In this document: piece by piece, positions 35,243 to 64,000 of the stretch
How positions within the stretch are numbered: position 1 is the stretch's first letter
Layout: every line of letters begins with the position of its first letter
From: Vitrella brassicaformis CCMP3155
Lineage: Eukaryota; Protista; Chromerida
Reading direction: 5' to 3'
Assembly: GCA_001179505.1 (NCBI GenBank)
Contig: CDMY01000280.1
Location: forward strand, 62,001-126,000
Length of the DNA: 64,000 nucleotides
Position numbers and translations under genes: made by a program
Notes under the pieces: generated by a model
What the model saw: only the letters and a program-made list of their open reading frames with translations
What the model was told of the DNA's origin: nothing
The model's database searches: none

Positions 35243-38200
35243 TTATACCTGTCCATCAGCTGTTTCGGCATGCTCTGCCTTGGCGAGGGTCTTCAATTCG
35301 GCTTCCAAAGCCTTTTCTTCATCCTCTAGCTCATCTATGATTCTCTTTCGTCGCTGCAGAAAGACACGGGTATCACACGCATAATTTCCCATCTCGACTT
35401 GGAACATTTAAATCTTCTCTTACTGAATCTGTAGAAAAAACGTCTGTCTGAGAAATTAGTTTGTCATACTGACGATCCAAGGCATTGGACCGCATTCCAA
35501 GGGCGGCGTAGCGTGGCTGATTGGTGTGTCCGCCGTATTTGTAGTAGTCGTCCGAATGCTGAGCCCCATTGGCTTTGAGGAGGGCAGCGACATCCTTCAG
35601 CTCCGGCTGCATCACCTGCACACACATGGCACGCAGTCAGGCCATGGCATCTCTTCATGCTTATCCCTCCGCTCACCACTTCGTCTAAAGGCGCCACGAT
35701 TAGACCGCCCGGCCGACGCTTGCCAAGGTTGGGGTCTGCTCCGGCTTCCAACAGCAGCTCCACAGTGTCGAATATCCGAGCGGCTCGCGCGCCATCAGCA
35801 TCCCACGCCAAGGGGCTGCCGGTCGCTGTCTCGGCCATCACTGCGCGATGAAGCGGCTCGCCGCACGCCATGTTTGGATCTGCGCCATTATCAAGAAGCG
35901 TCTTCACAGCCATCAAAGCATCTGCTGCCCCTTCTTGATAACGGACGAGAAAGAAATCGTACATGTGCTGCCTCATGCTTTTCCACCCCGTGTCTCCCTT
36001 TCGAATTTGATCGATTCGATCGATGAGCTCGGCGTGTTGGAGTCCCGTGAACTCTGTAATCAGCTGACAACTGATGACTGCCACCGTCAGAATGATGTTG
36101 GCAATGGGAAGCAGCTGCAGCTGGTAAGTGGGATAGCAGAGGAAGAGGACATTGCATATCAGGCCGAGAAGGTCTTCGCAGAGTATGCTGCAAAGACGAT
36201 TGCCCCTGGCATTACGATGGCTTCTGGCGTCAACTTTGGCCTCAAGCATGGTAATCAGAGAAGGATAAAGCATAAAGGTCCCTACCAGGGGGGACAAAAA
36301 GTAGAGGCGCCAAGGCCATGTGGGGACTCTCTCGCTGAAGACCGCAATCGAAAAGAATGTAATCCAATCGGTGATGGCATCGACAAGCTCCGAAATCAGC
36401 ACATGCAAAAGACCCAATCGGCTGTAATCGGGAAGAATAACATCCGGAAGAAGCTCTCTCGGAATCATGCAGTGGGTCACGATGCCAATAGAAATTTCAA
36501 TCACAATGCCGATGAAGAACAGCAAAACAGCCCCCCACCAGAGAAACTCCCCGATCCAGATGAAGATCCACCAAGCAGGAAATGCACCTACCAACCCGCC
36601 CAGCGTCCCGACGCCACACAGAAAGGGGGCCCCCAGATGCAGATAAGGAATTGTGGGGGTATGCTTTTTCAGTGAGGCTGTTATGTTCTGCGCCAGCTGC
36701 TTCTGCACGTGCTCTTGCGAGGCTTCGAAGCCCATGGCTTCGTAGGCTGAGGCGATGGCATTCAGCAGATTCAAAAACAGATTGCAGATGAGTGTGCCGA
36801 TAGCACCGGCTCCTGGGTTGGCGCAAAGAATGATCACGACGTTGATGAAGTCGATGCTGTCGTTCAGGACAGAGATGCCGCTCAGCACCGTGATCACCCT
36901 GACGAGCCACCGAGGAGGGTCGGGCCGGTGGAAGCGAGCGATGATGGGTGCCGTGGGAGACGGCCCTCGCGGGGTCGCTGCCTGAGAGTCCACGCCCGAG
37001 TCAATGAGACAGGAGCGTTCGCCTAATTCGATGTCGCCCGATTGTCCCTTCTTGCGCTGCACCTGAGCGACCGCAAGGCACAGGTCGTCAGCAAATTGCT
37101 CACACAATGATGTCTCCCCTGCGTACCCGTGTGGCATTCATTTGGACGTACTCCAGGCACCATTTGAGGACGAGCAGAGCCGTCGAGACAGCGGCAGAGG
37201 CGAGAAGGAGTCGCTTGCACAGGAGGGGAATGGTGTATTGGGACGGCTCGTTGATGATCATCTCCCAGAAGGAGAACCAGTCGGTCACTGCACATTGCAA
37301 TGGGGGCAGAGAGAGAGCAAGATGCGTTATGATGGCGCGAGAGATGGTAAGAGGCCTGCTGTTGCTTACGGGCTGCAAAGGCGCCCAGAAGGATGAGCAT
37401 CATGTTCTCTCGGAGGAACACTTGCAGTGATAGTCTGGGCCCTTGGGCCGGGCCCTGGCTGGATGAAGCATCAGCTGTATCGGCACGCACTGCCTTTAGA
37501 GCTTTCTCGCTATTCTCTCGTCGCACTTCAATCAAAATTCTTGTCGCCACGTGTGCATCGCAAATCAGTGCCTTGGATCGCATCAAAAGGGCGGCGTAGC
37601 GTGGCTGATTGGTATGTCCGCCGTATTTATAGTAGTCGTCCGAATGCCGAGCCCCATTGGCTTTGAGGAGGGCGGCGACATGATTCAGCTCAGGCTGTAT
37701 TACCTGCACACACATGACACGCAGTCAGGCCGTGTGTGTGAATCTATGTGGCATCCATCTCTTCATGCTTATCACCCCGCTCACCACTTCGTCTAAAGGC
37801 GTCACGACTTGGCCGCCGGCCAGCTGCCGTGTGCCAAGATTGGGGTCTGCCCCGGCCTCCAGCAGCAGCTCCACAGTGTTGAAAATCCGAGCGGCTCGCG
37901 CGCCATCAGCATCCCACGCCAAGGGGCTATCGCCGGTCGCTGTCTCGGCCATCACTGCGCGATGAAGCGGCTCTCCGTTTGCCATGTTTGGATCTGCGCC
38001 ACTGTCGACGAGCTCTTTCATGGCCAATAAAGGAGCGTCTCCGTTTCGAATCTGGTCGATTCGATCGATGAGCTCGGCGTGCTGGATGCCGATGTGTGTT
38101 CTAATCAGCTGACAACTGACGACCGCCACCGTCAAAATGATGTTGGCTATGGGGAGCAGCTGCAGCTGGTAAGTGGGATAGCAGAGGAACAGGACATTGC

Positions 38201-39640
38201 ATACCAGGCCGAGAAGGCCTTTGCAGAGTATGCTAGAGAGACGATTGCGTCTTGCATCACGATGGCTTCTGGCGTCAACCTTGGCCTCGAGTATTGCGAT
38301 CAGAGACGGGCAAAGGATTGGCCCTCTGGCGTCAATTTTCTGCTCGAGTGTTGCAATTAGAGAAGGGTAAAGGATGAGGGTTTCTGTGGCGGGGCAGAGA
38401 AAGTAGAGGTGCCAGAGCCATGTTGGGACTCTCTCGTTGAATACCGCAATCGTGAAGAAGGTAATCCAGGTGCTGGTTGTATAGACAAGCTCCGCGATCA
38501 GCAAATGTAAAAGACCCAATCGGCAGTAGTCGAAGAGAAGAACATCCGAAAGAAGCTCCCTCGGAATGAGGCAGTGCGTCACGATACCCATAAAGAGTCC
38601 ATAAATTAATTTCGTCAGCATCAGAAAGATGGCAAACCACCAAAAAAGGCGCCCAATCCAGGTCATCCACCAAAGCCACCAAGAATTAGCAAGAAGGGCG
38701 CCGATCAACCCAAAAGGCGCAAAAAGCACGCCGGTCACCCCACAAGGCATAATAAAGACCGCCGGTACAGCGGTAGCCAACATCCGAACGATATCGAACA
38801 GAACGAGCTCGTCCAACCCTTTGCTTGTGATTTGCGCTAGCTGTTGCATGCGCATTCGCGAGGCTTCGAAGCCCATTGCCTTGTAGGCTGAGGCGATGGC
38901 ATTCAGCAGATTCAAGGAGAGATTGCTGATGAGTATCCCCATCGCGTGGCTTCGGGGGTTGCCGATGGCGCAAAGAATGATCACGACGTTGATGAAGTCG
39001 ATGCTGTCGTTGAGGACGGAGATGCCGTTCAGCACCGTGATCATCCTGACGAGCCACCGAGGAGGGTCGGGCCGCTCGAAGCAAGTGATGATGGGTGCCG
39101 TAAGGGATGGCCCCTGCGGGGTCGCTGCCTGAGAGTTCACGCCTGAGTCGATGAGACGGGAGCGTTCGCCTAATTCGATGTCGCCCGATTGTCCCTTCTT
39201 GCGCTGCACCTGAGCGACCGCAAGGCACCAAAGACGTCAGCAAATTGCTCACACAATGATGTCCCCACTGCCTACCAGTGTGGCATTCATTTGGACGTAC
39301 TCCAGGCACCATTTGAGGACGAGCAGAGCCGTCGAGACAGCGGCAGAGGCGAGAAGGAGTCGCTTGCACAGAGCCGGAATGGTGTATTGCGACGGCTCGT
39401 CGATGATCATCTCCCAGAAGGAGAACCAGTCGGTCACTGCACATGTGCATTGGGGGCAGAGAGAGAGCAAGATGCGTTATGATGGCGCGAGAGATAGCAA
39501 GGGGCCTGCTGTTGCTTACGTGCCGCGAAGGCGCCCAGAAGGATGAGCATGATATTCTGTCGGAGGAACACTTGCAGTGATAATCGTCTGGGACCTTGGC
39601 TGGTCGAAGCCTGCGACACGGAGGGTTGTCCGCCGGCCAT
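35243..39640 (-). CDS. Polytopic membrane protein with two in-frame tandem [multi-TM + ankyrin] modules (A 39640-~37500; B ~37470-35243)
   Basis: Each module: LQVFLR(E/Q)N(M/I)MLILLGAFAA|LTDWFSFWEM..KWCLEYVQMNATL|VQRKKGQSGDIEL..several TM helices..LCYPTYQLQLLPIANIILTVAV..GADPNMA.GEPLHRAV..VELLLEAGADPNLG|..LLKANGA. The last exon of A reads directly into the first exon of B (ORF 37023-37715). Long ORFs 37725-39209 and 35464-37137. Confidence 0.85.
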
Positions 39641-39796
39641 TCTTCTCTTCTGCAGTCGGTTTGTGCCTGTTGCTTTGTGCCTTGTTGCCACGATCCTATA
39701 AATAAGTGGGGGCGACTTGGGGGGCGAGACTGAGGGGCGACGGAGTCTCGGTCTTCCGCGGCCCCCTCGTGAAGGACACCAGGACACATCGCAACA

Positions 39797-40342
39797 ATGG
39801 CGCTACTTCGCCAGATATTGGGCTTTGCACTGGCAGCTGTTGTTCTCGCTGCTTTCCTCGCAGCTCAAACCGACGCGAACATGGTACGCATCTTTCCTCT
39901 GCCCAGGCGTTCTGCCATCCGCGAAGATACCTTGTTTGTATCATTGCAGATCAAAGACAAGCCCAATGTAGCCTATATGTCCTTCTTGGCAAGAGACATC
40001 ACCAGTAGGCCAGACAACAAATTGAAGCTCAATCGTTGGAGTGCTTCTGCGTGTGCTCGACAGAGAAGGCAGTCGGTCCATCGTCGGTCAACAAATCGTC
40101 GTCGATCCCTCACCCATCGTCGCCCGAGAGCACCACCCAAGGCCAGAGCACCAGGAGCCACGCCAAGACGGTGGCCGTTGAGGCTGATGGGAGACGTCGC
40201 GTCATCCATCCGATCGAGTGTGTGGATAGGCGGCAGTGTGCACGAGACAGAGACAGACATGGTCATGTGCACTTGGGAACGGACTCTACATTTCGTTCAA
40301 GGGCTTGGTTGTGTGTCGACCGATATCAGAACACAGTGTTAA
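39797..40342 (+). CDS. Small predicted secreted protein
   Basis: Signal-peptide-like MALLRQILGFALAAVVLAAFLAAQTDA, then a GT-AG intron (gtacgc..cattgcag) and a basic exon. 3' end uncertain. Confidence 0.35.
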   Translation: MALLRQILGFALAAVVLAAFLAAQTDANMVRIFPLPRRSAIREDTLFVSLQIKDKPNVAYMSFLARDITSRPDNKLKLNRWSASACARQRRQSVHRRSTNRRRSLTHRRPRAPPKARAPGATPRRWPLRLMGDVASSIRSSVWIGGSVHETETDMVMCTWERTLHFVQGLGCVSTDIRTQC

Positions 40343-40395
40343 CATGCCAACAAGCAGAATGTCCAACCATATTAACATCTCACAGCGACACGAAG

Positions 40396-42000
40396 TCATT
40401 CTAACCCCTCCCCCTCCACCGCCCCGCCATCATCGCCATCACTGTCCGATTCCTCATCATTTGACGGTGGTTCTTCCTCTTCTTCCCACACCTTGTGGCC
40501 CAGCTCAGCGCCGCACACACGCATCACGGCAGCACGTGTCTCTGTGTATGGGCGAAGCTCGGTCGTGAACACCAGGACAGCCATGACGTCCCGCCCTTCA
40601 CTGCTGCCGTCGGCAACCATCAGCTCTGCCACAATTTCCTTGTCCACCACCTCGTTTGTCAGCAGCAGACTCCGAAAATGCCCCGGGTTGTCAGGAAGGC
40701 CTCCAGTGGCGCAGTCGAACACTGGGCACCCCTCGACCGGCCCACTGAATGGGGCCGTCAGCAGCTGCTGGCATCGACGGAAACATGCCGAGTCGCGCTG
40801 AGCAGATGTCCACTGCCTGATGGAGTCATTCCGGATCTCCTCACAGGCGGCCAAGAGGCGCACACCCACCAGACATGTGAGAGAGCGATACACCTCGTCA
40901 TGCCCAGTGTAACGCGCTGGCGGGTTGTTGCGGTCGAATGCATCAGGTGGGAAGAGGGGCGAGGGATTGGGGAGGACGGTGAAGTGGTCGAAACGGTCCT
41001 CGCCGAAGTCCCTTAGCCGATCATCGCCCTCCATCAGCTGCCGGCCCTCAACCACGAGCTCCTTCCCGATGACGCTCAGCTGTCTCATGGCCTCTGGGGC
41101 GGCCAGGAATGCCTGTCGCCCTGCCCGCGTGCTGACATGCTCGAAGGTCGCCTCACCCAGCACCAGTGGCTCGTCGCAGATCAGCCGGAAGATCACCAGA
41201 TGCGGCCGCCATCTGACCCACTCGCCGCCATGCTCCAGCACAAACAGCCGCCTCAGCACACGGGGCAGCTCGTCAGACACACTCAGCCACGTTGTCCCGT
41301 CGCTGCGGATGCGCCGATGGCGGGGGCCCTCGATGGCCGCCACACGCAGCAGCTCAGCGCCGAGGCTCATGTGGCTGTCGATAGCCTTTGAGAGGCGGCT
41401 GGTGAAGTAGGCACCATCGATTGGGTGCTCTGTCGCGACAATGAAGTCGGTCTTGACCAGCCGGAGGGTCAGGGCGTCATCGATGTCCAGCAGGTCGGCA
41501 AGAAGGGGATGCAGGGAGAAGGGGAGGCTGGCGAAGCTGTGGCGAACCTGAATGACAAGCACCCGATGGAGAAGAGAAATGAAGAGGAGAAAGATGCAAA
41601 AGCTTCAGATCCCGAAGCGCGTACCGTCTGTGTGTCACCCATGTCAGGACGCAGGCGACTCCCAGTAGCGAAATACCGAAAGCCGCCACGCACCTGATCA
41701 TTCCAACACAGACACACCAGAGAAAGCCATCCCTGTCGACTGAGTGAGCAACCCGGTCTACAGCTGTCTGCTTTGCCAACCGCGTGTGGCTCGAGTTCCC
41801 TGAACCGTGCGATGCTGTTGGGCACCACCGCCTCGAAGAGCTCCCTGCCGCCCGCCTCCTTCATGGACACCCGTGTACCGCCTGGCGTGCTGGTTGTGGC
41901 ATACACCTCCGCCGCCACCCATCCCCGCCGCGGTGCGGCCGACGCCTGCAGCACGCGAGTGCCGGGCTTGTAGCGACAGGAAGGGATCACCTGCATGGAG
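40396..42000 (-). CDS. Lineage-specific hypothetical protein with acidic C-terminus
   Basis: Long terminal exon (VRHSFASLPFSLHPLLADLLDIDDALTLRL..EEEEEPPSNDEESDSDGDD) preceded by phase-0 exons ..ELFEAVVPNSIARFRELEPHA|VRGGFRYFATGSRLRPDMGDTQT. Start uncertain. Confidence 0.65.
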
Positions 42001-42225
42001 AAAACACACAAGAGGGAAGGGAATCGACGACACAACCGGTGGGTCAAAAGCGCTGTGTGTGTGGTTTCACCATGAGTGCAGGAGTCGGTATGGCACAGGA
42101 CGCTGCCAACATGAGCCACCAAGACGTATGGTGCGCTGTCTTGCCTCTTCTCTCCTTTCTCTGGCCTTCCTGCGATCCAAGCGCGCAGTCGTTCGTGGAG
42201 CAAAGAACGCAGAATAGGTGAAGCC

Positions 42226-42861
42226 ATGAGCGGTGACGGTGGTAGCGGCAAGGTGGGATCTGTAGTGGAAGTGGTGGATTCGGAGGCGATGGTCGAGGTA
42301 GACCTGGAGGAAGGCAGGGCGGTGGCCGACAGGGTCATCGAGGATGAGGCCACCCATGCTGCCACCAAAGAGGAGGAGATGGAGGTATAACCGGACGGAC
42401 GGGGGGGCGAAGGGACAGACTGCACTCGATGGATCTCTGCCCTGCTGATGTGCGCTGCGTCTGTGTGTGTGCAGCCTTCGCACGAGATAGGTCGTGGTCC
42501 GAGTTACTACCGCAAGGACGACGTGCCCCTCACGTGCGTCGTTGCCAGCTTCTGGCTCAGCTTCATCTTCCCCATCGCTGGTCAGACACACACACACACA
42601 CACACGCGCACACACGCACACACGCACACAAAGGGCTTCGAATGCAGCAACGCATCATCCGTGTGTGTGTCTGTGCGTGCAGGTTGCATAGGATTCTGCC
42701 ACAACGTGACGGCGCCCGAGACGAGCGCCCGCAAGATGTGGGCGCGACGGGCGGTGCTGATCGGGTCCATCCTGTCGTTTGTGTACCTGCTCGTCATCGC
42801 CTCTGCCATCGGCTCCTCGCAGCATGAGAACCACGTTGACAACTTCGTCAATGCGGAATAG
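42226..42861 (+). CDS. Small two-TM membrane protein with acidic N-terminus (3 exons)
   Basis: MSGDGGSGKVGSVVEVVDSE..KEEEME|PSHEIG..VPLTCVVASFWLSFIFPIAG|CIGFCHNVTAPETSARKMWARRAVLIGSILSFVYLLVIASAIG..AE*; canonical GT-AG introns. Confidence 0.75.
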
Positions 42862-44172
42862 CTGGGGCGTGCATGAGATGAGGCTGGTGCAACGGAGTGG
42901 GCCACTTTCTCGTGAGGGGGTGGATGCGATGCCTGGCGATTGGTCGTTTTTGATGTCAGTCGGGCTCCCTGTGGACACGTGTGTGTGTGGTTTTATCCAT
43001 CTGCGTGTGTGTAGTGGATGTGTCCGTGTGTTCTGTGGCCATCTTTTTGCCTGGCGCACTGAGCGAAGATGATGCGTCTCTCTCTCTCTCTCTCTGGTAT
43101 GTCCTCCTGCGTGTGCTGTGGTGTCTGCATTGCCGACTGGTCCTGGAGGTGGTGAGGCGAGTGCTGCTCAGATGATCGTCTTGACCAGCACTTGCCTGGC
43201 CACCGGAGCATCATGTCGGCAGCAGCACGCACACACACACACACGCGTGAAGAGAGACGAGACGCAGCGGGCAGTGATGCCAGCCGGTGTGTGTGTGGTT
43301 TGGGTCACTTTTGGATGATGTCACTGTGTATCACCCTGCCCACGTCTCAGTAGCGTGATCGATGCATTCGTTGTGTCTTCTCCTCACTGTCGACGTCGAT
43401 ACCCAGTGCATGAGAATACACTGGCGGTCGCCGTCGGCGGTGGGGCGGGACAACGGATGCATCGATCGGCGCATGGGATGCAGGGAAGCTAGCTAGCCTG
43501 TTTTCTTGCCCTTGGTTCTTGTGTGCCTTGGTCTGGATGCGCGTCACTGCTGTCTACCGTCGTGGTCAAGTGCTGCACGAAGACTGATCGGATAAACGTC
43601 TCGATCAGAAACCGTGTGCTGCTTGGTCTGAACGTCTGACTGCGGTGCTGCGCAGAAATCATCCATGCCCTTGGAATTGACAGACAGCGAGGCCACACGC
43701 CGCTCCCTCTCTCTCTCTCTCTGCAGACTTGTCGGTGCGTGGTGTCTGTCCGTGACGCTGTCCCTCCCCCGCCGATCGAGCAAGGTTTTTGATGCTCGGT
43801 GGTGAGGACAGGGCTGCTTGAATACCTACCTGCATGGTGTGTCCGCCTGACCTGTGGTGTGCACGATGGACGGCATGGCATGACGACTCGATCGTGAGAC
43901 GATGGATGGATGGCTTTATAAGCGAGGTCGTCTGCCTGTGATGGTATTTATTTGACCGAGGAAATAGAGACGAGTCACTCACACATGCCGCATACACCTG
44001 CTAGACATCAGTCAGCCAACCACACAGTCAATGTACAGGTCCCCGAGCCTCCCTTGAACAAAAGAAAGCACCGGGAACGACACACATGGCCATTCTACCA
44101 TCATGCAGGCCTATCTTATCTACAAACGCTGACAAATGACACTGGCATCGGCACTCCGCCCCTGGTACACAA

Positions 44173-45450
44173 TCACGTGACCAGCTTGATCAATGTGAAG
44201 AGCTGAAACTCCACCATGGATGGCACGGCGTATGTGGGCATCAGCACCATGGGGTAGCTCAGCACCTCTCGTGTGTCGGGCTTCCGCCCGCCAGTATACC
44301 CAAACCCCCACAAAGACGGCAGATAGTAATACAGGAACTGAACAAACAACACACACGGATGCCGCAACACGCTTGTGTCTGTGTGTCTCGTAGAAATGTG
44401 TTGATCGCTGCTTACGATGACGGCGAGTGGTGCCACCGAGATGCCCACAGCGCAGAGGAAAATGAGGAACGAAGTGTTGACCGCCACGCCGGCCGTCAGG
44501 CAGATGCCCGTGACCAACACGGGCACCGCATGGAGGAAGTCGACAGTCGCCGGCATTGCGGCCCACCACAGCGGCAGCTTGCCCCGGAAATACTGCACAC
44601 ACATGAAACGAAGTCAGGAAGGAATTTGCCATTGGTCGGCTGGTGGCTTCTGCTTCGCAGCCGGCAGACCTTGATTAGTGTCCCGACAGCCAACACACGA
44701 ACGTACTGGAGCGTGAACAGCCACCACAGGGGAGTTGCATCAAGCAGATCCTGCAAGGAAGGCAATTCACAAGAAACAAACAGATGACACGCTGCAATCA
44801 TGGGTCTCTTCCTCGTATGCCCACCGCAGTGGCGGTCCTGAAATCCCCCGGCACAGCCGCCGCAATGATCGTGGCGACGAGCGGCAGTATGCCCACCGCC
44901 ATCGTGAGCTGCCGTGTGGTCCGCAGGAAGAAGCCCTGGTACCCAAGAGCGCCGACCACCACACCGAAGACCAGGCGGACGGCGAACCATGTCCAGAGGG
45001 AATACTCCTGGGCGGCAGAGTACCAGCCGATAGTGAACGCCAGCCAGATGAACTGCCAGAGAAAGATCAGTGGCGTGACGACGCTGTTGCCGCGGTCATG
45101 CCGGGGCTGTTCCTCCCACTCACGGGAATCGAGCTTCTGAGATTCCACATCGCCTGCCAACCGCACACACACACACGCACACACAGGCATGGTAAGGAAA
45201 GAATGACTCCTATTGTGAAGCTGCAGAGCGTACTGCATGATGTGCATTCCTGACCTTGAACAGGGACGGTGCCGTACTGCTGTGCTGCCATTTACGCTTT
45301 GCGAACACGTAGATATCGTCAAGAGGCTGTAAGTGAATCGACGGCGGACAGATCTGTTAGATCCGAGCACAGATAAAGCAGCACAACCATGAACACGACA
45401 AGCATAAAGCTCCTTTCCCTAAACATGAACACGAATCTTGCGAGCTCCAT
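44173..45450 (-). CDS. Integral membrane protein resembling an uncharacterised bacterial membrane family
   Basis: Exons ..LIFLWQFIWLAFTIGW..|DLLDATPLWWLFTLQYVRVLAVGTLIK|YFRGKLPLWWAAMPATVDFLHAVPVLV..|..VLSYPMVLMPTYAVPSMVEFQLFTLIKLVT*. 5' end approximate. Confidence 0.65.
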
Positions 45451-45747
45451 GGTCTCATTTGCGAGCTCGACTTTCTGCGTGGGAGTTTTAGTCAGCGCGA
45501 AGGTCCCGTCAGCAGCAGAGGCCACCAGAGAAGTCACAACACCTTCCTCACCCTCTTACTTCCAGCCTTGCTTCCAGCCGTAGTTTTTGAGAGCCCCATT
45601 GCTGCGTAGCCCATTGCTGGGGCTGTGCTGAAGACGGCCCTGTAGCCCCATCGCCGCATTTTTAGCAGTCATTTTTTTGCGACATATATATTCTTCTTTG
45701 CTCTTCCGCCCCCCCACCCCGTCATTTCAAGAGCCCCGCCTGCAGCT

Positions 45748-46335: not shown

Positions 46336-46366
<31 letters not shown>

Positions 46367-50906: not shown

Positions 50907-51255
50907 TCAAAAGGCGTCCGAAATGAGTACACACCTGTCGGTGGGCTTGAGTGGCGTCTTGGAGGCTTTGGGGGGGTTCAGCTGCAGCGGCTCGCCGTCA
51001 CGCCACACGCCAATCACACTGTCACCCTCGGCACGCGCAAGCTCGTTCAACTGACACACACACACGCACACACACACACAGGCAGGCAGAAAGAGACACT
51101 GTGGTTGCATGTGTGTGTGTGGGTGAGTGTGAAGGCACATTGGTTACTTGTGCGACTGTGATGGTCTGTTTGGGTGCGACTTTGTATTTGCTGTTGATGA
51201 CCGGCACACAGATCTCCTTGCCGGACGGCTGCAGCAACTCCTGCGCAACCGCACA

Positions 51256-51289
<34 letters not shown>

Positions 51290-53655
51290 TGCGCCTCTCC
51301 CTCCAATCTCGTGCCCACTCGAACGAACCGTGTAGATGTGTTGCAGCTCCGGCTGCATGAGGATCTGGACGAGGACGCCGCTCTCGAGCTCTGCCGGCAC
51401 TATCACATCGACGCCCTGCAGCTTTGCCCTCGTGGCCCTGAGCATCAATGTGGGCGATGACGCCAGCCGGCGGGACTGATAAGGGAGCCGCCAGGGGCGG
51501 GGGGCGGCCTTGGCGGGCAGGTACTGCACGCTCAACGCCTGGCTGAGGTGCGTCACCACTCTGATGGATCAAGGGAGAGAGGGAGGGATGGCGTGTGCCG
51601 GTGTGTGTGTGTGTGTCTTAGTGCCTCGGCATAGGTTTGTTTGTGTCCCTCATGTGTGACTCGAGCAGCAGCCGCATCCCCAGGATCTCAGCGTCACGCT
51701 GCATCAACACATCAACCAATCAGCCACACTCACATCCATCCGCAGAGCGAGAGGATGGCTTTGTGTCCTCATCTCAGCTCATCTGACCTCTTGCTGTATG
51801 TTGACGTCGCTCGTTGACCTGACAGAGCTGCCGTCGAGGTGCACGAGCAGCGCCACGTCGGCATCCTCAGCCTGCACAGACACAGTGGATGGATGGATGG
51901 ATGGATGGGCCATCTGATGGCTGGCCACCTTGACGCTTTTGAGTGTCTTGAGGGTGGAAGGGTCCTTGACGACCGTCCTGATGCGCAGGTTGCCGAAGCG
52001 GCGGCAGGTGGTGGGCCGGGGGAACGCCTTGACGTGCAGCTGACCCACACGCCTGAACACATAACACACACACACACACACACACAGGTGGGTATCTGTG
52101 TGTGTGTCGAGAGGTGAATTGGGTTAGGTCAGTTACTGGTTGAGGGGTGCTGGTGTGACCAGAGTGACGTCGAGCGGTTTGGTGAAAGTCGCCGCCCACT
52201 CGTCGAGATGACGCAACAGACTGGCCGTCTGCTCTGAGCTCCCACTGCAGCCAAACCGCCCACAGACACACACCCAACAGCACACACACAGTCTCTCTCT
52301 CTCTGTGTGTGTGTGTGTGTGGTGTATCTGTCGGCTTACGCGTCCATGGTCAGGTCGGCCTTTGCCGTGTTGAGGATGAGCACTTTTCGCGGATATGCCT
52401 TCTGCATTTCGGCCTGTGTGGCCCGCCGGCTCCTCCTGACGTCAGACACCTCATGTGTGCCGACGGCCGAGCGGGAGTAACGCAAATTGGTCTTCTGCAC
52501 ACACACACCACACACACAGATGGATGGATGGATGGACTCGTCTGTGTGTGTGTGTGTGTACGTCCGTGGCGACAAAGATGAGCTGGTCGTTGGGGCCGAT
52601 CATCACACTGTTGGGCGGCGACAGCATCAGCTCGCCGTCCTTGACCAGACCACACAATGACGCCTGCACACACACACACATCCAGGCAACACACACCAAC
52701 AGATATGGCCTCTTGTCAGTCATTCAAGCATCCCGTGTGTGTGTGTGTGTGTGTGGTTTACCCTTGGGAAGTGTTTCCACGCCTGTCCGAAGGTCTTGCC
52801 CTGCACGCCAGCGTACATTCTGGCCGCCTCGATGTAGAACTCACTGCCCTCCTGGTGGAACAACTCGGCGTACACCTGACAGACAGACAGACAGACAGCA
52901 GGTGGACACACACACACACACACACAGATGGATGGATGGATGGATGGATGTGTGTGTGTGTAGGGTCGGTGGCCGACCGTGCTGAGTCCGGGCTGCACGA
53001 CACACTGTGCGAGCAGCCGATCCACAAAGCCGTCGGTGTCGACCTCAGCCAGCGATGCGAAACGGCCGGCCGCAGACGCACCGGGGTGCTGCTCCACTGC
53101 TGCCTCAGGCACAGACACCTGCAGCACACCACAGCACAGCACAGCACACACCACGAGCACATAGATAGATGGACACACACAACCAACTCTCTCTCTCTCT
53201 CGGTGTGTCTGTCGACTGACCACGACGGTCGGCGGGTGTTTTGCTGCCCTTGACGACGGCAGGTCGTTGCTCTGTCTGTCCCGTACAGCGGCGAGTACGG
53301 CCGTCTGGCGGCGGACGGCAGACGCCCCACCAGTCTGCTCAGCCCCCTTGGCGGCCGCAGTGTCCCTCAGCACCAACACGTTCTTGGCCGCACCTGCTGC
53401 TGCCTTGTCCAAATCCTATCGACCCATTGCACACAACACACACAGACAGACAGACAGACAGAGAGGGATGTGTGTGTGTGGTGGTGTGTGTGGCTTGGTC
53501 ACTTACGGTGAGGCTGTTGGGGTCTCCCTCTCGTGTGACGATTCTGAGAGTGCTCTGCCGCTTGACGTCCTCGGCGATCTTCATGTCCATCGTCGGGCGA
53601 CTCTGATGGACGCACACACGCACCCACCCACACACACTCACACACGTGCCAATCT

Positions 53656-53686
<31 letters not shown>

Positions 53687-54781
53687 CGTGTCTGTCTGCC
53701 AATCGCTGTCCATCACCCACCCCACCCACTTGGTCAGAGAGTACCACAACGGTGCCGGGGTCCCTGCCCTCCTTCTTGGCGAGGTCCAGCTGCCGCAGCA
53801 CAGCCGTCGTGCGGTCGTTCCAGTTGAGCACCACAGTGTGGCCGCTCTCGTGAACCGGGAAGTTGCCGTAACGAAACGATGCTATCGCAGTCGACAGGGC
53901 CGTCGACAGCAGCCCCAACAGAGAGGCGAACGTCAGAATACCTGCGGGCAGGCGGGCACCAAGCCAAGCAATCAACCACACACAAAACCGCTCGGTGCGG
54001 TGGGTGTCCTTCCTGTGTGTGTGTGTGTGTGTGGTTCCCTACCGGTGATGTACAGTCCGTTGACGACCCCCCGGCCCCACCCAGTCTCGTTGAACAAGCT
54101 GCAGCCGGGCAGCCCATTGAGCCACAGGTAAGACTGGAAGAGCGACTGGCGCCACGACCGGCCCGTTGCTGTGCGGTAGAAGAACGCCCCGACGCCGATC
54201 GCCGTGGCCGCAAACCCCGCCAGAGCCAACATCTGGACGGGCAGGGCGGCCGCCAGCAGCAGCTGGAACCGATACACCACCGACCGCGACACGAAGGACG
54301 GGAAGAACCGCACAATCGCCAGCAGCACGGCCAGAGAGGCCGTGACAATGACCACATTGCGCTGGAGCTTCGGCATGCGGGCGATGAACTTCGGGACAGA
54401 GAGGGAGGGCAGGGGCGGCGGGGAGGGGAGGGGCGGCAGGGGCAGCCTCCGTATCGGCATCATCCGGCCCTTCCGCCTCTTCTGGCGCTCTCTCTCCTGG
54501 TCGGACTGCAGCACACTGACGGGCACGGCCACATCCGGCCAGCTACTCTGGTCGATGTATCTGTGCTGAATCTGCGGCGGGGCGGCGTGGGAGAACAGCA
54601 CGCCACACTTCCTTTGCTGACGGTGCTGCTCCAGCAGCTGAGTCGGCCGCCCCATCGACCGCCGCTCCAGCCACGGCAGCACAAACCCATCGCAGTGGGC
54701 CAACAGGGCGACCAGAGGGAAGGCGACGGACGCCAGGAAGGCCACCGGCCTCCTGCGTCGTGGCAGCACCGCGGTGCGCAT
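50907..54781 (-). CDS. CASTOR/POLLUX/DMI1-family cation channel (PEC-like) with N-terminal signal + transit-like leader
   Basis: Pore region SWRQSLFQSYLWL..GILTFASLLGLLS; RCK1 VHESGHTVVLNWNDRTTAVLRQL..RIVTREGDP; FVDRLLAQCVVQPGLSTV|YAELFHQEGSEFY; RCK2 RKVLILN..VIVPAELESGVLVQILMQPELQHIYT|ELLQPSGKEIC..GDSVIGVWRDGEPLQLNPPK..RCVLISDAF*. Confidence 0.88.
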
Positions 54782-55231
54782 GAGTGAGTGAGTCGGTCAG
54801 CCACCGGGGGATTGTCGAAAGGGGGACGCCGGATCTCGCTGCCTTGACATTAGATCTTGACAATGGCCGATGGGCAAACGTCCACAGCACCCAACACGGA
54901 GGCGTCTTCGGCTTCGCAATGCGAGCTTAGATGTGCGAAGCTCGCAAAGTTTGCACAGCTTCATTTTGGCACGAAAGGAGGTTGGAGAGGAGCGGTGAAG
55001 ATCACAGCATATCCGCTGACCAAGATCTAGCCCGCACTCGCCCGGTGAGTCGAGTCAGCTCACACGCAGGCCAGTGGAGGACAAGAGGTACACCGATGGA
55101 GGCAGGCGTGCAGACAGACAGACAGACGAACAGCCTTAGCACAGATGCACCAGAATAGGATGCGCCACTATGGGTATCGTCTCTTGCATCCTACCTTTTC
55201 TTGTGCGTTATCTGATCTGCGGTCAGGCATC

Positions 55232-58200
55232 ATGTCGGTGGCTTCGTCGTTCGACCCCGTGACCAACGACAATGTGGACGGGTGGGGTCCCTCATACACC
55301 GACGACATCTTCGACTCATGCCTCCACGAAACTGAAAAGTTCCCCTTCGAAGTCTCACTCAAAAGTAAGCAAAGCACACAGGCCGACTAGTTGGCCTGGT
55401 GGCGGGATGGATGGCTCACCAGCCACTGTCTGTCTATCTGTCTGTCTGTCTGTTGGGTGTGTGTGATTGGTTCGCTGGTTGAGCAGTTGACAAGTTGAGT
55501 CGCGTGTGTGACTTCACCCAGAGCGGCTACCGATGGCAGCAGGAGAGGGCCAGGCAGCAAGGTACACAGACAGACAGACATACTACGCCTGACACAAAGA
55601 GTTGCCAGAATCGCTCGACGCGCGACTGTGTTTGTGTTGTGTGTGGTGCATTGTGGTCAGCGATTCGCTTCGGTCGTGAGGGCGGAACACCCGAGAAGGA
55701 GAACGAAGAAGACGCGTTCCAGCTTGTGGTACGCACCGCACCCTGCCGAACGACTGACTGATGCAGACATACATCGCTCGCTCACTGATCAGCTCCCTGT
55801 GTGTGTCTGTGTGGCTGGTCACGTCACAGGACAGCCGCCCGGCGCCTAAGCCAAAGTATAGGACGTATCAGCAGCGACGGCCGTGGCAGTACCACGGCGG
55901 CAGGGGGGGCCGACAGCAACCGCAGGAGGACGAGCGAAAGTCAGTGAGAATGAGCATGTCGAACGAACGAAGGGGACAATCGATGCATTGATCGTGTGTG
56001 TGTTGTGTGTGGTTATGTTGTCAGTTTGCAGCAGGGTCGTTGGGGTCTGCAGCGTCAGAAGACGCAGCAGCGTCAGCAGCAGAAACAGCTGCAGAGGCAG
56101 CAGCAGCAGAGGCAGCAGAGGAGATGGGACAAGTGAGTCACGACCAACACAACAGACGGAGGGAGGGAGGGAGGGAGGGACGATTGGATTGGAGGGGGGA
56201 ATGCACATGAGTGTCTTGGTGTGTGTCGTCCGTCCATCAGTCGTTCCAGGATGTTCCGCGAGTGGTCGGTGCAGACAAAGCCCGAATGGCAAGTCGTCCA
56301 GGAGGTAATGATCAACACTCACAGACACACAGACAGACAGACAGACAGACAGAACCACCAACACACGTGTGTGCGCATCAGCATCAATCGTGTTGCATCT
56401 CTCTCTCTCTCTCTCTGTCCGTATGAGCAGATCCCCTTGGCGCAGCTGCCCAAGCAGAACCTCGATGCGTCAAAAGTCAAAGTCACCGACCTGTGAGCAG
56501 CAAACCACACACACACACACACACTCAAGCAATGACACCCATTCTTTACTGAGATTTCTATGCCTATTCTCTCTGTCCTTCAGCAAGTGGTGCGGCGATC
56601 TGCGTCACTACGACCGTTCGTACGACCGCATCACGGAGAAGACCAAGAGGAACCTGACGCGCTACACACAGCTGCAGTTCTACAACCCCTCCACCACATC
56701 GGACATCAACCTCAGGTCACACTCACACACTCGCCTCGCAACAAGATGAGATAGATGGTCATGTGCAGCTGGAGGGCCTGTGGTGTGTTGTGGTGTGTGC
56801 GTGTTGTGTTGTGCAGGGAGTTCTTGGCCGATGACAGTGTGCAAGTGATTGTCACAGGTGCGGCAGACAGCTAGGCAGACAGACAGACACGCAGGACACG
56901 CACAAGCCATCCCACACCTTCAGGTATATGTGGTGGTGTGGTTGTGTGGTTGTGTGGTGCAGATTCCATCCTGTCGATGATGATGGCTGCCTCACGGTCC
57001 GTCTACTCGTGGGACATCATCGTCATTGTGGTCAGTCAGCGAACCAGTCCTTCACACACACACACACACACGCCCCTCTACCCCACTCTCTCTCTGTGTG
57101 ATTGTGGTGTGCAGGCTGAGGGCAAGATAGTGCTGGACAAGCGCGAGGACGCCCCCGACCTGCTCACAGTCAATGAAAACGCACAGGAACCACCCGCACA
57201 AGACGCCAAGGTGAGTGGAGGCAAGTGGTGGGTGCGGTGCCTCCAGTCGGTGGCAGCTTTTTCCCTTGTTGTTGTGTGTGTTGCGATTGTCAGCCTGAGT
57301 TTAATCAGCCGCAGCGCCTGGCCTTTGAAGCGTCGCTCATCAACCAGAACTTCTCGCAACAGGTCAGTCGATGCGGTCGCATCGGCCTGACCATTTGCCT
57401 TTAGCTGTCTTGTGTTGTGTTGTGTTGTGTTGTGTGTACTGTGTGTAGGTGCTGGACAAGACGTCGCCCCCGGTCGATCTCAAGGAGAAGAACCCATTCG
57501 CACAAGGCATGCTCCCACACTCGCCCAGTGACCCACCCTCACCCCTCCCTCGATCCCTCTCTGTGTCGGTCTCTCTCAGACGACAGCCAGGCAGCGTCGT
57601 GTGCGTTCCGGTACCGCAAGTTCACCGTCCCAGGAAACGACAAGGCACCCAATGAAGCGGTCGGTCCCCACTCACACCACACACATCACAAAAGCAAGAC
57701 AGCCGCACTCTCACACTGTGTGTGTGTCCATGTGGGTATTGGTCAGGGCAAGAAGGATCTGACATTGGTTGTGCGTGCGACGGTGGACGCCAAGATGCCC
57801 ACCGAGGCGGGCGATTCCTACTGTGTCATCAAGGCACTCAACGAATACGACCCAAAGGCAAGCCGCCCAGGCAGTGTCAAATGACTGACCCCGCAAACGC
57901 GTCATGAGTGCCCGTTTGAGCAGGTGGGATTGAGTTGGCGCAAGTCTCTGGACTCACAGCGGGGCGCCGTGCTCGCGGACGGTAAGAAAAAACCGATCAC
58001 TCCCACACACACAGAGGGCATCACATGTGTGTGTGTGTGTTGGTTGGTTGGTTGTTCGTCCATCCATGTATCAGAGATCCGCAACAACGCCAACAAGCTG
58101 GGCCGTTGGGTGGCGCAGGCCAACATTGCCGGGGCTGACACTCTCAAGCTCGGATTCGTCACGCGAACCAACCCAAAGTAACAGACGGCTCACACGCACG

Positions 58201-58768
58201 GACACACGAATGCACCCCTGTGTGTCTTTCTCTCTGTGTCTGTAGGGATCCGACGTCTCACCAGGTGTTGAATTGCCAGACGTACCTCACCAACCAGTTC
58301 GCATCGCAAATCGGACTCACCGAAAACAACGCGTAGGCCAACAGAATCGCTCTCTCTACATGTGTGTGTGGATGTCTCTCTCTCTCTCTCTCTCTCAGAT
58401 GGGGCGTGGTTCGTTCGATCTTGGATTTGTGCGCATCCCAGGAGGACGGCAAGTACCTCCTGCTCAAGGACCCCAACAAGCCCATCATCAGGCTCTACCA
58501 GGTACGCATTCCGGACCCCACACACAGACACGGGGGCCTGGCCTGCACTCACCACATGTGCGTGTGTGTGTGTTTCGATCGCATGATCCACCAACAGATA
58601 GCGTGGGAGGACTTTGCTGCCGACGATGAGGACGAGGAGGACGTCCGCCAGCCAGCGCCACCAGCTGACAAGGACAAGACACAGGTCAGTCGGTCACGCG
58701 CTCATTGCTCCACCATTCCCCTCTGCCATGCGTCTTGTTTCGGTGTGTATCAGGCTGGTGCCAAGTGA
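55232..58768 (+). CDS. EIF3D: Eukaryotic translation initiation factor 3 subunit D
   Basis: NDNVDGWGP; [10 protein letters not shown]; YDRSYDRI; [10 protein letters not shown]; [12 protein letters not shown]; FRYRKF; ALNEYDPK|[18 protein letters not shown]|[31 protein letters not shown]; [31 protein letters not shown]. Confidence 0.96.
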
Positions 58769-59218
58769 GCGATGGACTGGTCGGCCGAGATCACGCGTGC
58801 GTGCAGCCAGCCGTGCCAGCCTGCTGTATCGCCGCCACACTGTTCGTGCAGCTAGCTTGTTCAGGTGTGTGTCTCGTGCGAGCGACTGAGCCCAGATTTT
58901 TGAAGGTCTGTGCATTGCATGCGATTCGTGTCAATCGGGTGGAATGCAGTGGTGCGGTCACATATCTGACCGTCGGGTATGCAGCAATGGCTCGGCTGCA
59001 CTCCTTTGTGTGTGTGTGTGTGTGTGTGTGTGACGAAGGGCAACGTGAGGTTTCAAGAGTGAACTGCCATCTTTCTGAATCCCAGACCGAATATGCCCTT
59101 TGAGTGCCGAATACAAGCATCACCGTCTCAGTAGCCTAGTCAACTCATGTCACTGCACCCCACTGGACTGCACTCCACTGGACTGATGCAGGGAGGAAAG
59201 AGATCGTGGAAAGAGATT

Positions 59219-59720
59219 ATGGAGGCAGAGACAGGGTGTTTCAGGGTTGTTCGCCGCCCCGCCTCCCGGCCGTCCGCTGCTGGCCGCCGCCCGCCTTGCG
59301 CTTCTTTCCTTCTTCTGCTGCTGTTGGTTGTTGCTGAGGCTGTGGGGCGGGGGGCTGGGCACCAGCAGCCGCGATGGCTGCACTACACGCAGAAGTTGAT
59401 TGATTCTACGACCTTCCAGGGGCCCACCTATCTACACGTACAGATAGGTTCTTCTGTACAGCCATCCATCTATCTGTACGTGTCTCACATCTCACATCCG
59501 TCTTTCAAGAAACTGAGTTACTCTCCCCGACTGAACCCACCCCCTCCCCCTCCCCGACTCCTATTGGCGACTCGGCGCTTCTTGCGCACCTCCCCGCCCT
59601 GCTGTGCCCCTCCGGCCGTCCAGGGCTGCTGCACGCCACGTCCTGCTGTTGTATGCTGTTGCTGGTTGTTCTTCTGCTGGCTGTTCTACTGTTGGTTGTT
59701 GCGCTGTGGAGGTCGTAAGA
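59219..59720 (+). CDS. Possible small signal-peptide/TM-containing ORF upstream of the plus-strand ankyrin gene
   Basis: MEAETG..ASFLLLLLLVVAEAVG.. and a second hydrophobic stretch CCCMLLLVVLLLAVLLLVVALWRS*. Exon linkage not established. Confidence 0.2.
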
Positions 59721-60122
59721 AAGGCAGACATTGGGCAGACAGAGACACGATGTACATCGAGTGATCGAGTTCGGTGACATCGTGCAGCATCAAAGTAGCC
59801 CGGGGCCCGCTGCTGGTAATTTGCACACACACACACACCCCACTGTGGAAGGCGACTGGCATACGTGCGCCTTTCTACCGGAAACACAAATGACCCAGCG
59901 ATCACCCTACCAGCGATGGGAGCGCTGCCAGCGAGGGGAGGCAATACTTGGACAGTGGCTGGACATATGGACATGAGAGTGTGGTCATTTGAAAGCCCTT
60001 GCTCTTGCGGTCATTTTGGCCCATTTCCTCTCCCTTCCCCGCAGATCCGCGAGCTCAGCCTTTTTGAGGACCGTGGCAGCACGGCGCAAACCAATAGGCA
60101 AAAACCACTGTAGAAGAGGAGA

Positions 60123-63100
60123 ATGGCTGGCGGACAGTCCTCCGTGTCGCAGGCTTCGTCCAGCCAAGGTCCCAGACGACTACCACTGCAAGTGTTCCTC
60201 CGAGAAAACATGATGCTCATCCTTCTGGGCGCCTTCGCAGCACGTAAGCAACAGCAGGCCTCTTACCATCTCTCACGTCATCATTATGTATCTTGCTCTC
60301 TCTCTGCCCCATTGCTTATGTGCAGTGACTGACTGGTTCTCCTGGTGGGAGATGAACATCGACGAGCCGTCCCAATATACCGTTCCCCTCCTGTGCAAGC
60401 GACTCCTTCTCGCATCTGCCTCTGTCTCTACGGCTCTGCTCGTCCTCAAATGGTGCCTGGAGTACGTCCAAATGAATGCCACACTGGTACGCAAAGGAGA
60501 CGTCTTCACGTGAGCAGTTCGCTGACGACTTGTGCATTGCGGTTGCTCAGGTGCAGCGCAAAAAGGGACAATCGGGCGACATCGAGTTGAGTGGACGCTC
60601 CCGTCTCATCGACTCGGGCGTGGACTCTCAGGCAGCGACCCCGCAAGGGCCGTCTCCCACGGCACCCATCATCGCTCGCTTCCACCGGCCCGACCCTCCT
60701 CGGTGGCTCATCAGGGTGATCACGGTGCTGAGCGGCATCTCTGTCCTCAACGACAGCATCGACTTCATCAACGTCGTGATCATTCTTTGCGCCATCGGCA
60801 ACCCCCGAAGCCACGCGATGGGAATACTCATCAGCAATCTCTCCTTGAATCTGCTGAACGCCATCGCCTCAGCCTACAAGGCAATGGGCTTCGAAGCCTC
60901 GCGAGAGCGCATGCAACAGCTAGCCATAGCGCAAAGACTAGAAGCTCCCGTCGTCCTCTTTGCGGCCTTGGGTGTGATCGGTGCTCTTTGCGCTTATTGG
61001 GGGTGGATCACTTGGTGGATAAGTTGGATTGGGGGGTTCTTATGGTGGCTTGCCTTGGCTTTGATGCTGGTGATATCAATGTGTGAGACGATCGCAACCT
61101 GCTCGAGAGAGTTTCTTTCAGATGTTCTTCTCTCCGACTACATCCGATTGGCACTCTTGCACGTGCTGATCGCGGAGCTTGTCTATACAACGAGCACCTG
61201 GATTACATTCTTCACGATTGCGATCTTCAGCGAGAGAGTCCCGACATGGCTTTGGCACCTCTACTTTCTCATCCCCGCTACAGAAACCCTCATCCTTTAC
61301 CAATCTCTAATCGCAACACTCGAGCAGAAAATTGACGCCAGAGCCCACGGCCATTCGACCAACGCACTCCGTCTTTGCACCATGATACTGGATGGCCTTG
61401 TGGGCCTGATATGCAATGCCCTCTTCCTCTGCTATCCCACTTACCAGCTGCAGCTGCTCCCAATAGCCAACATCATTCTGACGGTGGCAGTCGTCAGTTG
61501 TCAGCTGATTGCAGACTTAACGAGACTTCATCACGCCGAGCTCATCGACCGCATCGATCAGATCCGAAAGGGAGACACTGTGTTAGTGGACATAAAAGGG
61601 CTTCTCGACGGTGGAGCAGATCCAAACATGGCATGCGGCGAGCCACTCTATCGAGCAGTGGCGGTCGAGACACAGACCGACAGCGACCGGCCCTTGGTGA
61701 GGGATGCTGTCGCTGCGGCCGCTCGGATATTCAAGAGTGTGGAGCTGCTGTTGGAAGCCGGGGCAGATCCCAATCTTGGCACACGTCGCCTGGCCGGTGG
61801 CCTAGTCGTGGCGCCTTTAGACGAAGTGGTGAGTGGGGGGATAAGCATGAAGAGATGAATGCCATCGAGACTAACACACATGGCCTGACTGAGTGCCATG
61901 TTTGTGCAGGTAATACAGGCGGAGCTGAAGGATGTCGCCATCCTCCTCAAAGCCAATGGGGCTCGGCATTCGAAACACTTCTATAAATACGGCGGACACA
62001 CAAATCAGCCACGCTACGCCGCCATTTTGATGCGATCCAATGCCTTGGATCGCAAGTTAAATGCTTGGCGACATGAACGTGCATGTGTGCAAGAGATTCA
62101 GATGATTGAAGCCGGTTCAATGTAACATGGGTCTGATGTCCGTGTCTGCAGCAGGAAGGAGAGCCTGAAAAAAAGCTACTGGATGAAGAGAAAGCTTTGG
62201 AAGCCAATTTGAAGACCATCGCTCGCGCTGTGCGCGCAGAGACAGCCGATGGACAAGCTTTCGTGCCGCAGGCTTTGTCCAGTGACGGGCCTAGAAGGGT
62301 GTCATGGCAAGTCCTCCTCCGAGAAAACATAATGCTCATCCTTCTGGGCGCCTTCGCGGCACGTAAGCAACAGCAGGCCTCTTACCATCTCTCACGCCAT
62401 CATGATGCATCCCTCTCTCTGTCCCCATTGCAATGTGCAGTGACCGACTGGTTCTCCTTCTGGGAGATGATCATCGACGAGCCGTCCCAATACACCATTC
62501 CCCTTCTGTGCAAGCGGCTCCTTCTCGCATCTGCCTCTGTCTCTACTGCTCTGCTCGTCCTCAAATGGTGCCTGGAGTACGTCCAAATGAATGCCACACT
62601 GGTACGCAGAGGAGACGTCTTCAGGTGAGCACTTTGCTGACGACTTGTGCATTGCGGTTGCTCAGGTGCAGCGCAAAAAGGGACAATCGGGCGACATCGA
62701 ATTAGGCGAACGCTCCCGTCTCATCGACTCGGGCGTCGACTCTCAGGCAGCGACCCCGCGAGGGCCGTCTGCCACGGCACCCATCATCGCTCGCTTCCAC
62801 CGGCCCGACCCGCCTCGATGGCTGGTCAGGATGATCACGGTGCTGAGCGGCATCTCTGTCCTCAACGACATCATCGACTTCATCAACGTCGTGATCATTC
62901 TTTGCGCCATCGGCAACCCCCGAAGCCACGCGATGGGAATACTCATCAGCAATCTCTCCTTGAATCTGCTGAATGCCATCGCCTCAGTCTATAAGGCCAT
63001 GCGCTTCGAAGCCTCGCGAGAGCGCATGCAACAGCTAGCCATAGCGCGAAGACCAGAGGATCCGGGAGTATTGGGAGCTGCCGTCGTCCTCTTTGCGGTC

Positions 63101-64000
63101 TTGGGGGTGATCGGTGCTCTTTGTGCTTATTGGGGGTGGAGCACTTGGTGGATAAGTTGGATTGGGGGTTTCTTATGGTGGCTTGCCATCGCTGTGATGC
63201 TGATGATATCAATGTGTGGGACGATCGCAACCTGCTCGAGAGAGCCTCCTTCAGGGGCTCGCCTCTTCGATTACAGCCGATTGGGTCTTCTGCATGTGCT
63301 GATCGCGGAGCTTGTCTACACAACCAGCACCTGGATTACCTTCTTGACGATTGCGATGTTCAACAAGAGAGTCCCCATATGGCTGTGGCGCCTCTACTGT
63401 CTCATCCCCGCTACAGAAACCCTCATCCTTTACCCCTCTCTAATCGCAACACTCGAGCAGAAAATTGACGCCAGAGCCCATCGCCATCCGACCAAAGATG
63501 GTTGCAGCATACTCTGCGAAGCCCTTTTCGGCCTCACATGCAATGTCCTCTTCCTCTGCTATCCCACTTATCAACTGCAGCTGCTCCCAATAGCCAACAT
63601 CATTCTGACGGTGGCAGTTTTCAGTTGCCAGCTGAGTAGAAGGCCCATCGGCCTTCAACATGCCGAGCTCATCGACCGCATCCATCAAATTCGAAAGGAA
63701 GATGCTGCGTGGATAAGCATGGCCATGAAACAGCTTCTTGACGGTGGCGCAGATCCAAACATGGCGTGCGGCGAGCCGCTTCATCAGGCAGTGATGGCCG
63801 AGACAGAGACCGACGACAGCGACAGCCCCTTGGTGCGGGATACTGAAGGAGCTCCTATTCGGATTTTCAACACTGTGGAGCTGCTGTTGGAGGCCGGAGC
63901 AGACCCCAATCTTGGCAAGCGTCGGTTCGGCGGCCTAGTCGTGGCGCCTTTAGACGAAGTTGTGAGCGGAGGGTTAAGCACTAAGCGACGGACACCTTCG
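60123..64000 (+). CDS. Second [multi-TM + ankyrin] tandem-module gene (module C 60123-~62290; module D ~62290->64000), 3' partial
   Basis: Same exon-intron structure as the 35-39 kb gene. Linker exon QEGEPEKKLLDEEKALEANLKTIARAVRAETADGQAFVPQALSSDGPRRVSWQVLLRENIMLILLGAFAA joins C to D in frame. The main exon of D is open through VELLLEAGADPNLG..PLDEV near the window end. Confidence 0.85.

Follow-up and report, generated by a model that had tools for sequence, protein, structure and literature searches.

Vitrella brassicaformis is a unicellular chromerid alga and a relative of the malaria parasites. Here we describe genes in a window of 64,000 nucleotides (nt) of its 72.7-Mb assembly (contig C280:62001-126000; coordinates below are those of the window unless prefixed by a contig) in which whole, intron-bearing units of membrane protein with ankyrin-like repeats follow one another head to tail. 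The family to which they belong is real and restricted to this lineage, and the chained layout of its genes is unusual. We propose, with a probability of roughly 0.55, that the units of this Vitrella-only family are chained in frame; with low certainty, chaining may tie together the subunits of a membrane complex. The database proteins encoded at the C280 locus carry the name Vitrella brassicaformis CCMP3155, and genes of this genome have short GT-AG introns.

If the chains are made as predicted, they would show the joining of subunits into a multi-repeat membrane protein caught in the act, with one to six units coexisting in one genome. Alternatively, if they are polyproteins, a strategy of alveolate and euglenid algae would extend beyond the antenna proteins of the plastid. 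Either way, the family offers a tractable system for the effects of concatenation, copy exchange and a protected variable segment on a membrane protein family.

Modules, arrays and single genes

Copies were located by a six-frame genome search with the main exon as query and then placed on contigs. Homology queries were single exons or database proteins, and the spliced model of the minus-strand gene was used only to check frame and length. Module anatomy was derived from exact mapping of annotated spliced proteins together with a DNA alignment of 16 modules; the protein alignment covers the 14 intact ones. A first-pass annotation of the window had described four modules of about 2.1 kb, and a repeat search recovers them as a minus-strand tandem (modules A and B, 35.4-39.7 kb) and a plus-strand tandem (modules C and D, 60.1-64.0 kb). 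The two pairs are mutually inverted and 74-94% identical, with a start-to-start spacing of 2045-2150 nt, and all the motifs quoted in that annotation are found where it placed them. Its count of two genes with two modules each holds for the minus strand, whereas the plus-strand array does not end at module D and runs on to six modules.

The genome-wide collection of copies that the same annotation had proposed yields 16 modules and one fragment, organized as four arrays and two single-module genes, with one to six modules per locus. Array A1 (C280 42-48 kb) has three modules, A2 is the minus-strand pair of the window, A3 (C280 122-134.5 kb) has six, of which C and D are the first two, and A4 (C351 94-100 kb) has three. 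A run of N (an assembly gap) at C351:100517-100816 sits just upstream of A4, so the first module and start of this array are unassembled. The single-module genes S1 and S2 (C619; L033:3461-4707 and L034:3069-4358) lie about 25 kb apart in opposite orientation, and one of the two has a frameshift in its ankyrin part. S2 encodes P0004, a protein of 615 amino acids (aa) with its own start and stop; one module is therefore one complete coding sequence. The fragment (C109:1-2241; L007) is a 2.2-kb contig with only the main exon of one module, its tail and the start of the next, and probably stems from a further array, part of which was collapsed or left unplaced.

Each unit spans about 620-650 residues. 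Roughly ten predicted membrane helices come first, then two or three ankyrin-like repeats, and the unit closes with a short helical tail. Four introns with GT-AG ends lie at fixed places in the 16-module alignment: after the first helix (between ..GAFAA and LTDW..), after ..NATL, after ..PLDEV, and where the ankyrin-like repeats give way to the helical tail. The shared intron positions reported at first pass are thus borne out, except that module A has lost intron 4. Introns 1-3 are present in all copies, both single genes included; intron 4 is confined to arrays and is deleted or read through in three modules, A among them.

Two types of module can be distinguished. Type II (..NPGA.AIGTLICNLFL.., ..DAITDW..) resembles the single genes and includes module B and A3 module 5; A4 module 2, a frameshifted copy judged by its nearest neighbours, is probably of this type as well. 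The remaining modules are type I. Nearest neighbours switch between segments of the modules, which gives the family a mosaic structure, and the second introns of A3 modules 3 and 4 are identical, yet these modules differ by 0.46 at synonymous sites in their variable part.

In-frame joints and reading frames

The first-pass annotation had claimed head-to-tail fusion in frame, and for modules A and B this is certain. The two-module gene (35243..39640, minus strand; eight exons and seven GT-AG introns in a script-joined model) is free of stops over 1296 residues, from an ATG at 39640 to a stop ending at 35243. Its first exon (39520..39640) encodes the start MAGGQ and the first membrane helix, and the main exon of module A (37785..39209; type I), which is open and a multiple of three in length, encodes helices 3-10 and ankyrin-like repeats. 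Because module A has lost intron 4, the joint lies inside a single exon (37370..37703), which runs from the last ankyrin-like repeat and helical tail of A through the joint (TADA...SSSQGP) into the first helix of B. The main exon of module B (35677..37062), a type II module nearest to the single-module genes, is followed by a last exon (35243..35353) with the helical tail ending in ADGQV and a stop.

For other joints, support for fusion comes from annotated proteins with two and three modules and from a single spliced transcript, P0006 from MMETSP, which spans a joint and has introns 1-4 removed. A1, A2 and A3 begin with (M)MAGGQ, the sequence at internal joints is ..AETADG(Q/R)VF.., and last modules end in ..ADGQV(SMGW) and a stop, or a near variant. 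These start, joint and end sites align in the DNA from the ATG/ACA codon on, and internal joints contain neither a stop nor a start. All internal joints can be read in frame, and at four of them no splicing is needed: intron 4 is lost or read through at three, and the fourth belongs to a module that has no ankyrin part. In A3 module 3 (C280:126695-127801; L030:6695-7801), which lacks the whole ankyrin-like part, the last helix leads through the helical tail into the next module, again in frame.

The array ends are shared as well. The stretch of about 300 nt behind the stop of the minus-strand gene (34943..35238, minus strand) matches what follows the last modules of A4 and A1 at 80-87% identity, and over 50-85 nt it matches the 3′ ends of the single genes at 74-80%. 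Because the start, the end and this 3′ tail are fixed and shared, we conclude that the arrays keep an ancestral start and end and grew by internal duplication. The earlier suggestion that the window genes had been excised from longer arrays does not survive this comparison, since the tail is common to the last modules of other arrays and partly to single genes, and the ends are ancestral.

In the mechanism that we propose, a unit would be duplicated head to tail, introns included, between the fixed start MAGGQ and the fixed end ADGQV with its stop and 3′ tail, giving genes whose single reading frame would run through two to six units. The four residues common to start and end (A-D/G-G-Q) suggest that the joints may have arisen by unequal recombination on the short homology of their codons. 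Exchange between copies would keep the flanks alike, while helices 5 and 6 and the two adjoining cytoplasmic loops stay different. One conceivable outcome is that a channel- or carrier-like membrane complex would have its otherwise separate subunits tied into one chain; chaining would then fix the number and mix of subunits, and the ankyrin repeats and helical tails could act as cytoplasmic contacts. That the chains are translated as such we infer from the sequence. It is an unlikely extension of this idea that the arrays would give rise, by seamless in-frame gene chaining with splicing at the joints setting the number of units, to single-chain assemblies of up to about 60 helices or to polyproteins of polytopic non-plastid membrane proteins.

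The joints also bear on the main rival explanation, to which we assign a low probability: a polyprotein, in which the full-length chain would enter the membrane before cleavage at the linker (about A-D-G-Q/R) frees single units similar to the products of the two single-unit genes, so that a fixed set of different units would be co-expressed. The linker is conserved at all ten joints and falls where genes of the family naturally begin and end, the predicted cytoplasmic position of the unit ends would leave it within reach of a cytoplasmic protease, and single-unit genes such as that for P0004 exist. However, no cleavage motif is known here, and at the A-B joint the linker is incomplete, TADA being followed by a deletion. 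The known algal polyproteins are targeted to the plastid, and the light-harvesting units among them have three helices and are known to be cut apart, whereas Vitrella units have about ten helices with ankyrin-like repeats and the chains show no evident plastid leader. As a precedent, dinoflagellates, which are related alveolates, are reported to express membrane light-harvesting proteins as polyproteins (PMC4079212, citing Hiller et al. 1995). In such polyprotein genes of dinoflagellates and Euglena, several complete membrane units stand in one frame with a short conserved linker, and this arrangement is found in the Vitrella arrays.

A second rival, which we consider quite unlikely, is that the arrays are decaying tandem duplicates in which only the first or some units are translated, the continuity of frame being a relic and the long models artefacts of prediction. 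Several observations argue for it, and most of these also weigh against the in-frame chaining of subunits that we favour. Frameshifts or stops occur in 4 of the 16 modules: the membrane parts of A1 module 2 and A4 module 2 are frameshifted, and the ankyrin part has a stop in one module and a frameshift in another, in addition to its loss from A3 module 3. Joints in the plus-strand array meet stops when the expected splice sites are used. The C-D joint is in frame only through a non-homologous donor (GTGCAA at 62087) with the acceptor ending at 62151; with the donor at 62079, the homologue of the donors in other modules, the frame meets a stop five codons on. At the joint between modules 4 and 5 (C280:129974-130078), two acceptor AGs lie 12 nt apart, at C280:130053 (TTTCTGCAG) and 130065; with the first, usual one a stop follows three codons later, where P0011 ends, and with the second the frame continues into module 5. 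The public annotation is fragmented accordingly, breaking A3 into three proteins: P0001 (module 1, extending into intron 3, with C not joined to D), P0011 (1470 aa, modules 2-4) and P0009 (CEL99447.1; 1339 aa, modules 5-6). Three further points weigh against the chaining that we favour. None of the database proteins mapped to the genome matches the minus-strand gene. P0006, the sole transcript support, is an assembled sequence at most 87% identical to any genomic copy, its source being another strain, or else a copy that is unassembled or chimeric. AlphaFold models built on 14-row alignments gave no usable fold (predicted local distance difference test (pLDDT) 46.9 for P0004 and 45.7 for P0001). 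For decay speaks omega, the non-synonymous/synonymous ratio, which lies in the flanks at about 0.4-0.5 and is rather relaxed.

Decay accounts less well for what has stayed intact. The membrane parts of 14 of the 16 modules are open and multiples of three in length, so that the frame is preserved through many length differences, and the modules differ from one another at synonymous sites by 0.17-0.35. By a rough reckoning, neutral copies at such distances should bear several stops each; decay would therefore explain the broken modules but not the many open frames. Internal modules keep their splice sites, and the spliced transcript spans a joint. Flank omega ranges over about 0.2-0.6 with internal modules included, and substitution ratios of this kind show purifying selection on the internal modules.

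For C-D, then, fusion is unproven, and the claim of the first-pass annotation stands for A-B only in its certain form. The exons of this part of A3, all on the plus strand, are exon 1 with the start MAGGQ (60123..60243), the main exon of module C (60551..61828; type I), which corresponds to annotated P0001, and exon 4 of module C (61910..62086), whose candidate donors are the homologous one at 62079, which breaks the frame, and the one at 62087, which keeps it. In the joint exon (62152..62362), the helical tail of C leads through the linker ETADGQ into the first helix of D, and the main exon of module D (62666..63961; type I) is followed by four further modules beyond the window. Choice of splice site at the C-D joint, with its donors 8 nt apart, and at the joint between modules 4 and 5 could set the number of modules in the product.

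Membrane topology and the variable segment

All ten hydrophobic cores fall within helices of the model, and a topology with both termini in the cytoplasm (N-in/C-in) places 23 lysines and arginines (K+R) inside and 2 outside, so that the predicted ten-helix arrangement fits the positive-inside rule. The ankyrin part is cytoplasmic under this prediction. Both unit ends would then be on the same side of the membrane, and chaining would therefore leave the topology undisturbed. The helices contain polar residues that do not vary (helix 3, N-D..D..N; helices 4, 9 and 10, N; helix 7, H and E), for which reason a channel- or carrier-like core is tentatively favoured. The motifs TDW and (I/V)CN recur in the same order in both halves of the membrane domain; an internal repeat is doubtful, as self-comparison of the halves was not significant (probability 0.3).

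The hypervariable stretch noticed at first pass is real. It extends over 71-133 residues with many length changes, between ..FEAS.. and ..DY.RLGLLH.. and near-invariant flanks, and its DNA column identity is 0.54-0.8 versus about 0.9 in the flanks. In the window it measures 119 residues in module A (38523..38879, minus strand), 106 in B (36421..36738, minus strand), 88 in C (60881..61144, plus strand) and 94 in D (62996..63277, plus strand); per-indel counts within it are unreliable because the alignments are over-gapped. It is predicted to cover helices 5 and 6, joined on the outside by a very short loop, and the cytoplasmic loops on either side of them (4-5 and 6-7).

The first-pass annotation had read this stretch as the exposed sensor of a receptor or channel under diversifying selection, possibly with an XK/scramblase-like fold, a reading that we now regard as very unlikely. 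We compared the proportions of synonymous (pS) and non-synonymous (pN) differences by the Nei-Gojobori method. Over all pairs, median pS and pN are 0.28 and 0.13 in the flanks and 0.58 and 0.37 in the variable part, where omega is about 0.2-0.9. When eight less diverged module pairs were tested singly, pN never exceeded pS in the variable part. The non-synonymous/synonymous ratio was above that of the flanks in two of the eight, S1-S2 (odds ratio 3.9, p 4e-4) and module B versus A3 module 5 (p 0.04), and in S1-S2 the differences cluster in two patches with sharp bounds, one of them holding a compensated +2/+1 frameshift. These hot patches, the sharp bounds of the segment itself and one language-model hit to XK-related proteins speak for this reading. 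Against it, synonymous change is raised along with non-synonymous change, and the eight pairs have no non-synonymous excess, an outcome that the annotation had itself named as contradicting its term 'rapidly diversifying'. Positive selection of the segment is thus not shown by these comparisons. Nor does exposure fit, because the predicted topology, with its bias of positive charge to the inside, places the variable loops in the cytoplasm and the rest in the membrane. The simplest reading is that the flanks have been homogenized by exchange between copies, with old, differing variable segments retained.

Family assignment and known systems

The description of the family as new, made at first pass, is upheld: the membrane part matches no Pfam family, TRP, ion-transport and PGG families included, and no relative appeared outside Vitrella in word, profile or metagenome searches. 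A word search of 5.8 billion clusters found relatives only from Vitrella. A profile search of 1.84 billion representatives gave six hits, none beyond Vitrella proteins, the MMETSP transcript, the product of an ENA contig (P0003) and a fragment. A scan of JGI metagenomes found no relatives, a search of the PDB with the membrane-part profile returned chance hits only, and a literature search found nothing on the family.

The repeats after the membrane part are better placed. Single sequences score just below the Pfam cut-offs (Ank_4, 22.2 bits versus 22.7; Ank, 18.3 versus 21.1), and a profile of the ankyrin part from 11 modules matches consensus ankyrin proteins, DARPins, ankyrin-1 and the CLPB ankyrin domain with E values of 1e-8 to 1e-5. 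It has 209 PDB hits at E up to 1, and those listed are mostly ankyrin-repeat proteins. On this profile evidence the repeats appear to be ankyrin repeats. Ankyrin repeats are stacked helix-turn-helix units of about 33 residues; one of those in the Vitrella unit carries an insertion of about 13 residues, and both AlphaFold models have a pLDDT below 50 in the ankyrin part.

XK-related scramblases (PF09815) resemble the Vitrella unit in the number of hydrophobic segments and in having two cytoplasmic ends, as predicted for that unit, and their fold consists of two related repeats of four helices and a half-helix. The hint of such an identity in the first-pass annotation found no backing. PF09815 has no hit at E up to 1 in P0004, P0002 or P0006, and when the whole genome was searched with it in six frames, the one hit lay elsewhere and was at chance level. 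The language-model atlas had pointed to XK-related proteins (0.85, with 149 features in common); a paralogue, P0001 residues 1-425, did not repeat this hit. We therefore rejected an XK/scramblase identity, there being no PF09815 match and no reproduction of the lead.

Two further candidates were set aside. The analogy to TRP channels and plant ACD6 drawn at first pass holds in that ankyrin-type repeats stand on the cytoplasmic side of a multi-pass membrane protein in each case, but it does not reach beyond this, because the order of parts is reversed: the Vitrella repeats follow the membrane domain and number only two to three. A TRP or voltage-gated-like channel, which would have a six-helix ion-transport domain with a pore loop, was rejected for want of a Pfam match and of a PDB match to the membrane profile, and an ACD6-type protein, in which ankyrin repeats at the N terminus precede a PGG membrane domain, for want of a PGG match and for the reversed order.

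Two-pore channels and four-repeat sodium and calcium channels are single chains derived from joined subunits, and their repeats have diverged. By analogy, the Vitrella chains would likewise repeat a potentially separate subunit within one polypeptide. They differ from these channels in having no ion-transport domain match and in a unit number that varies from 1 to 6 between loci.

Further features of the window and its surroundings may be noted. Telomere repeats are absent at the contig ends, and an association of the arrays with telomeres is not supported. In addition to the gap beside A4, 300 nt long like the others, N runs lie at 3784-4083, 11651-11950 and 16898-17197 of the window and at C280:135242-135541. 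Within the 20-kb block between the two window arrays, (CA)n/(GA)n microsatellites with similar flanks occur at 43191-43257 and 51217-51283, and an open reading frame at 52723-53412 on the minus strand has a sub-threshold match to PF06241, the middle domain of the Castor/Pollux ion channel (E 3.7e-4, 20.9 bits versus a cut-off of 26.7).

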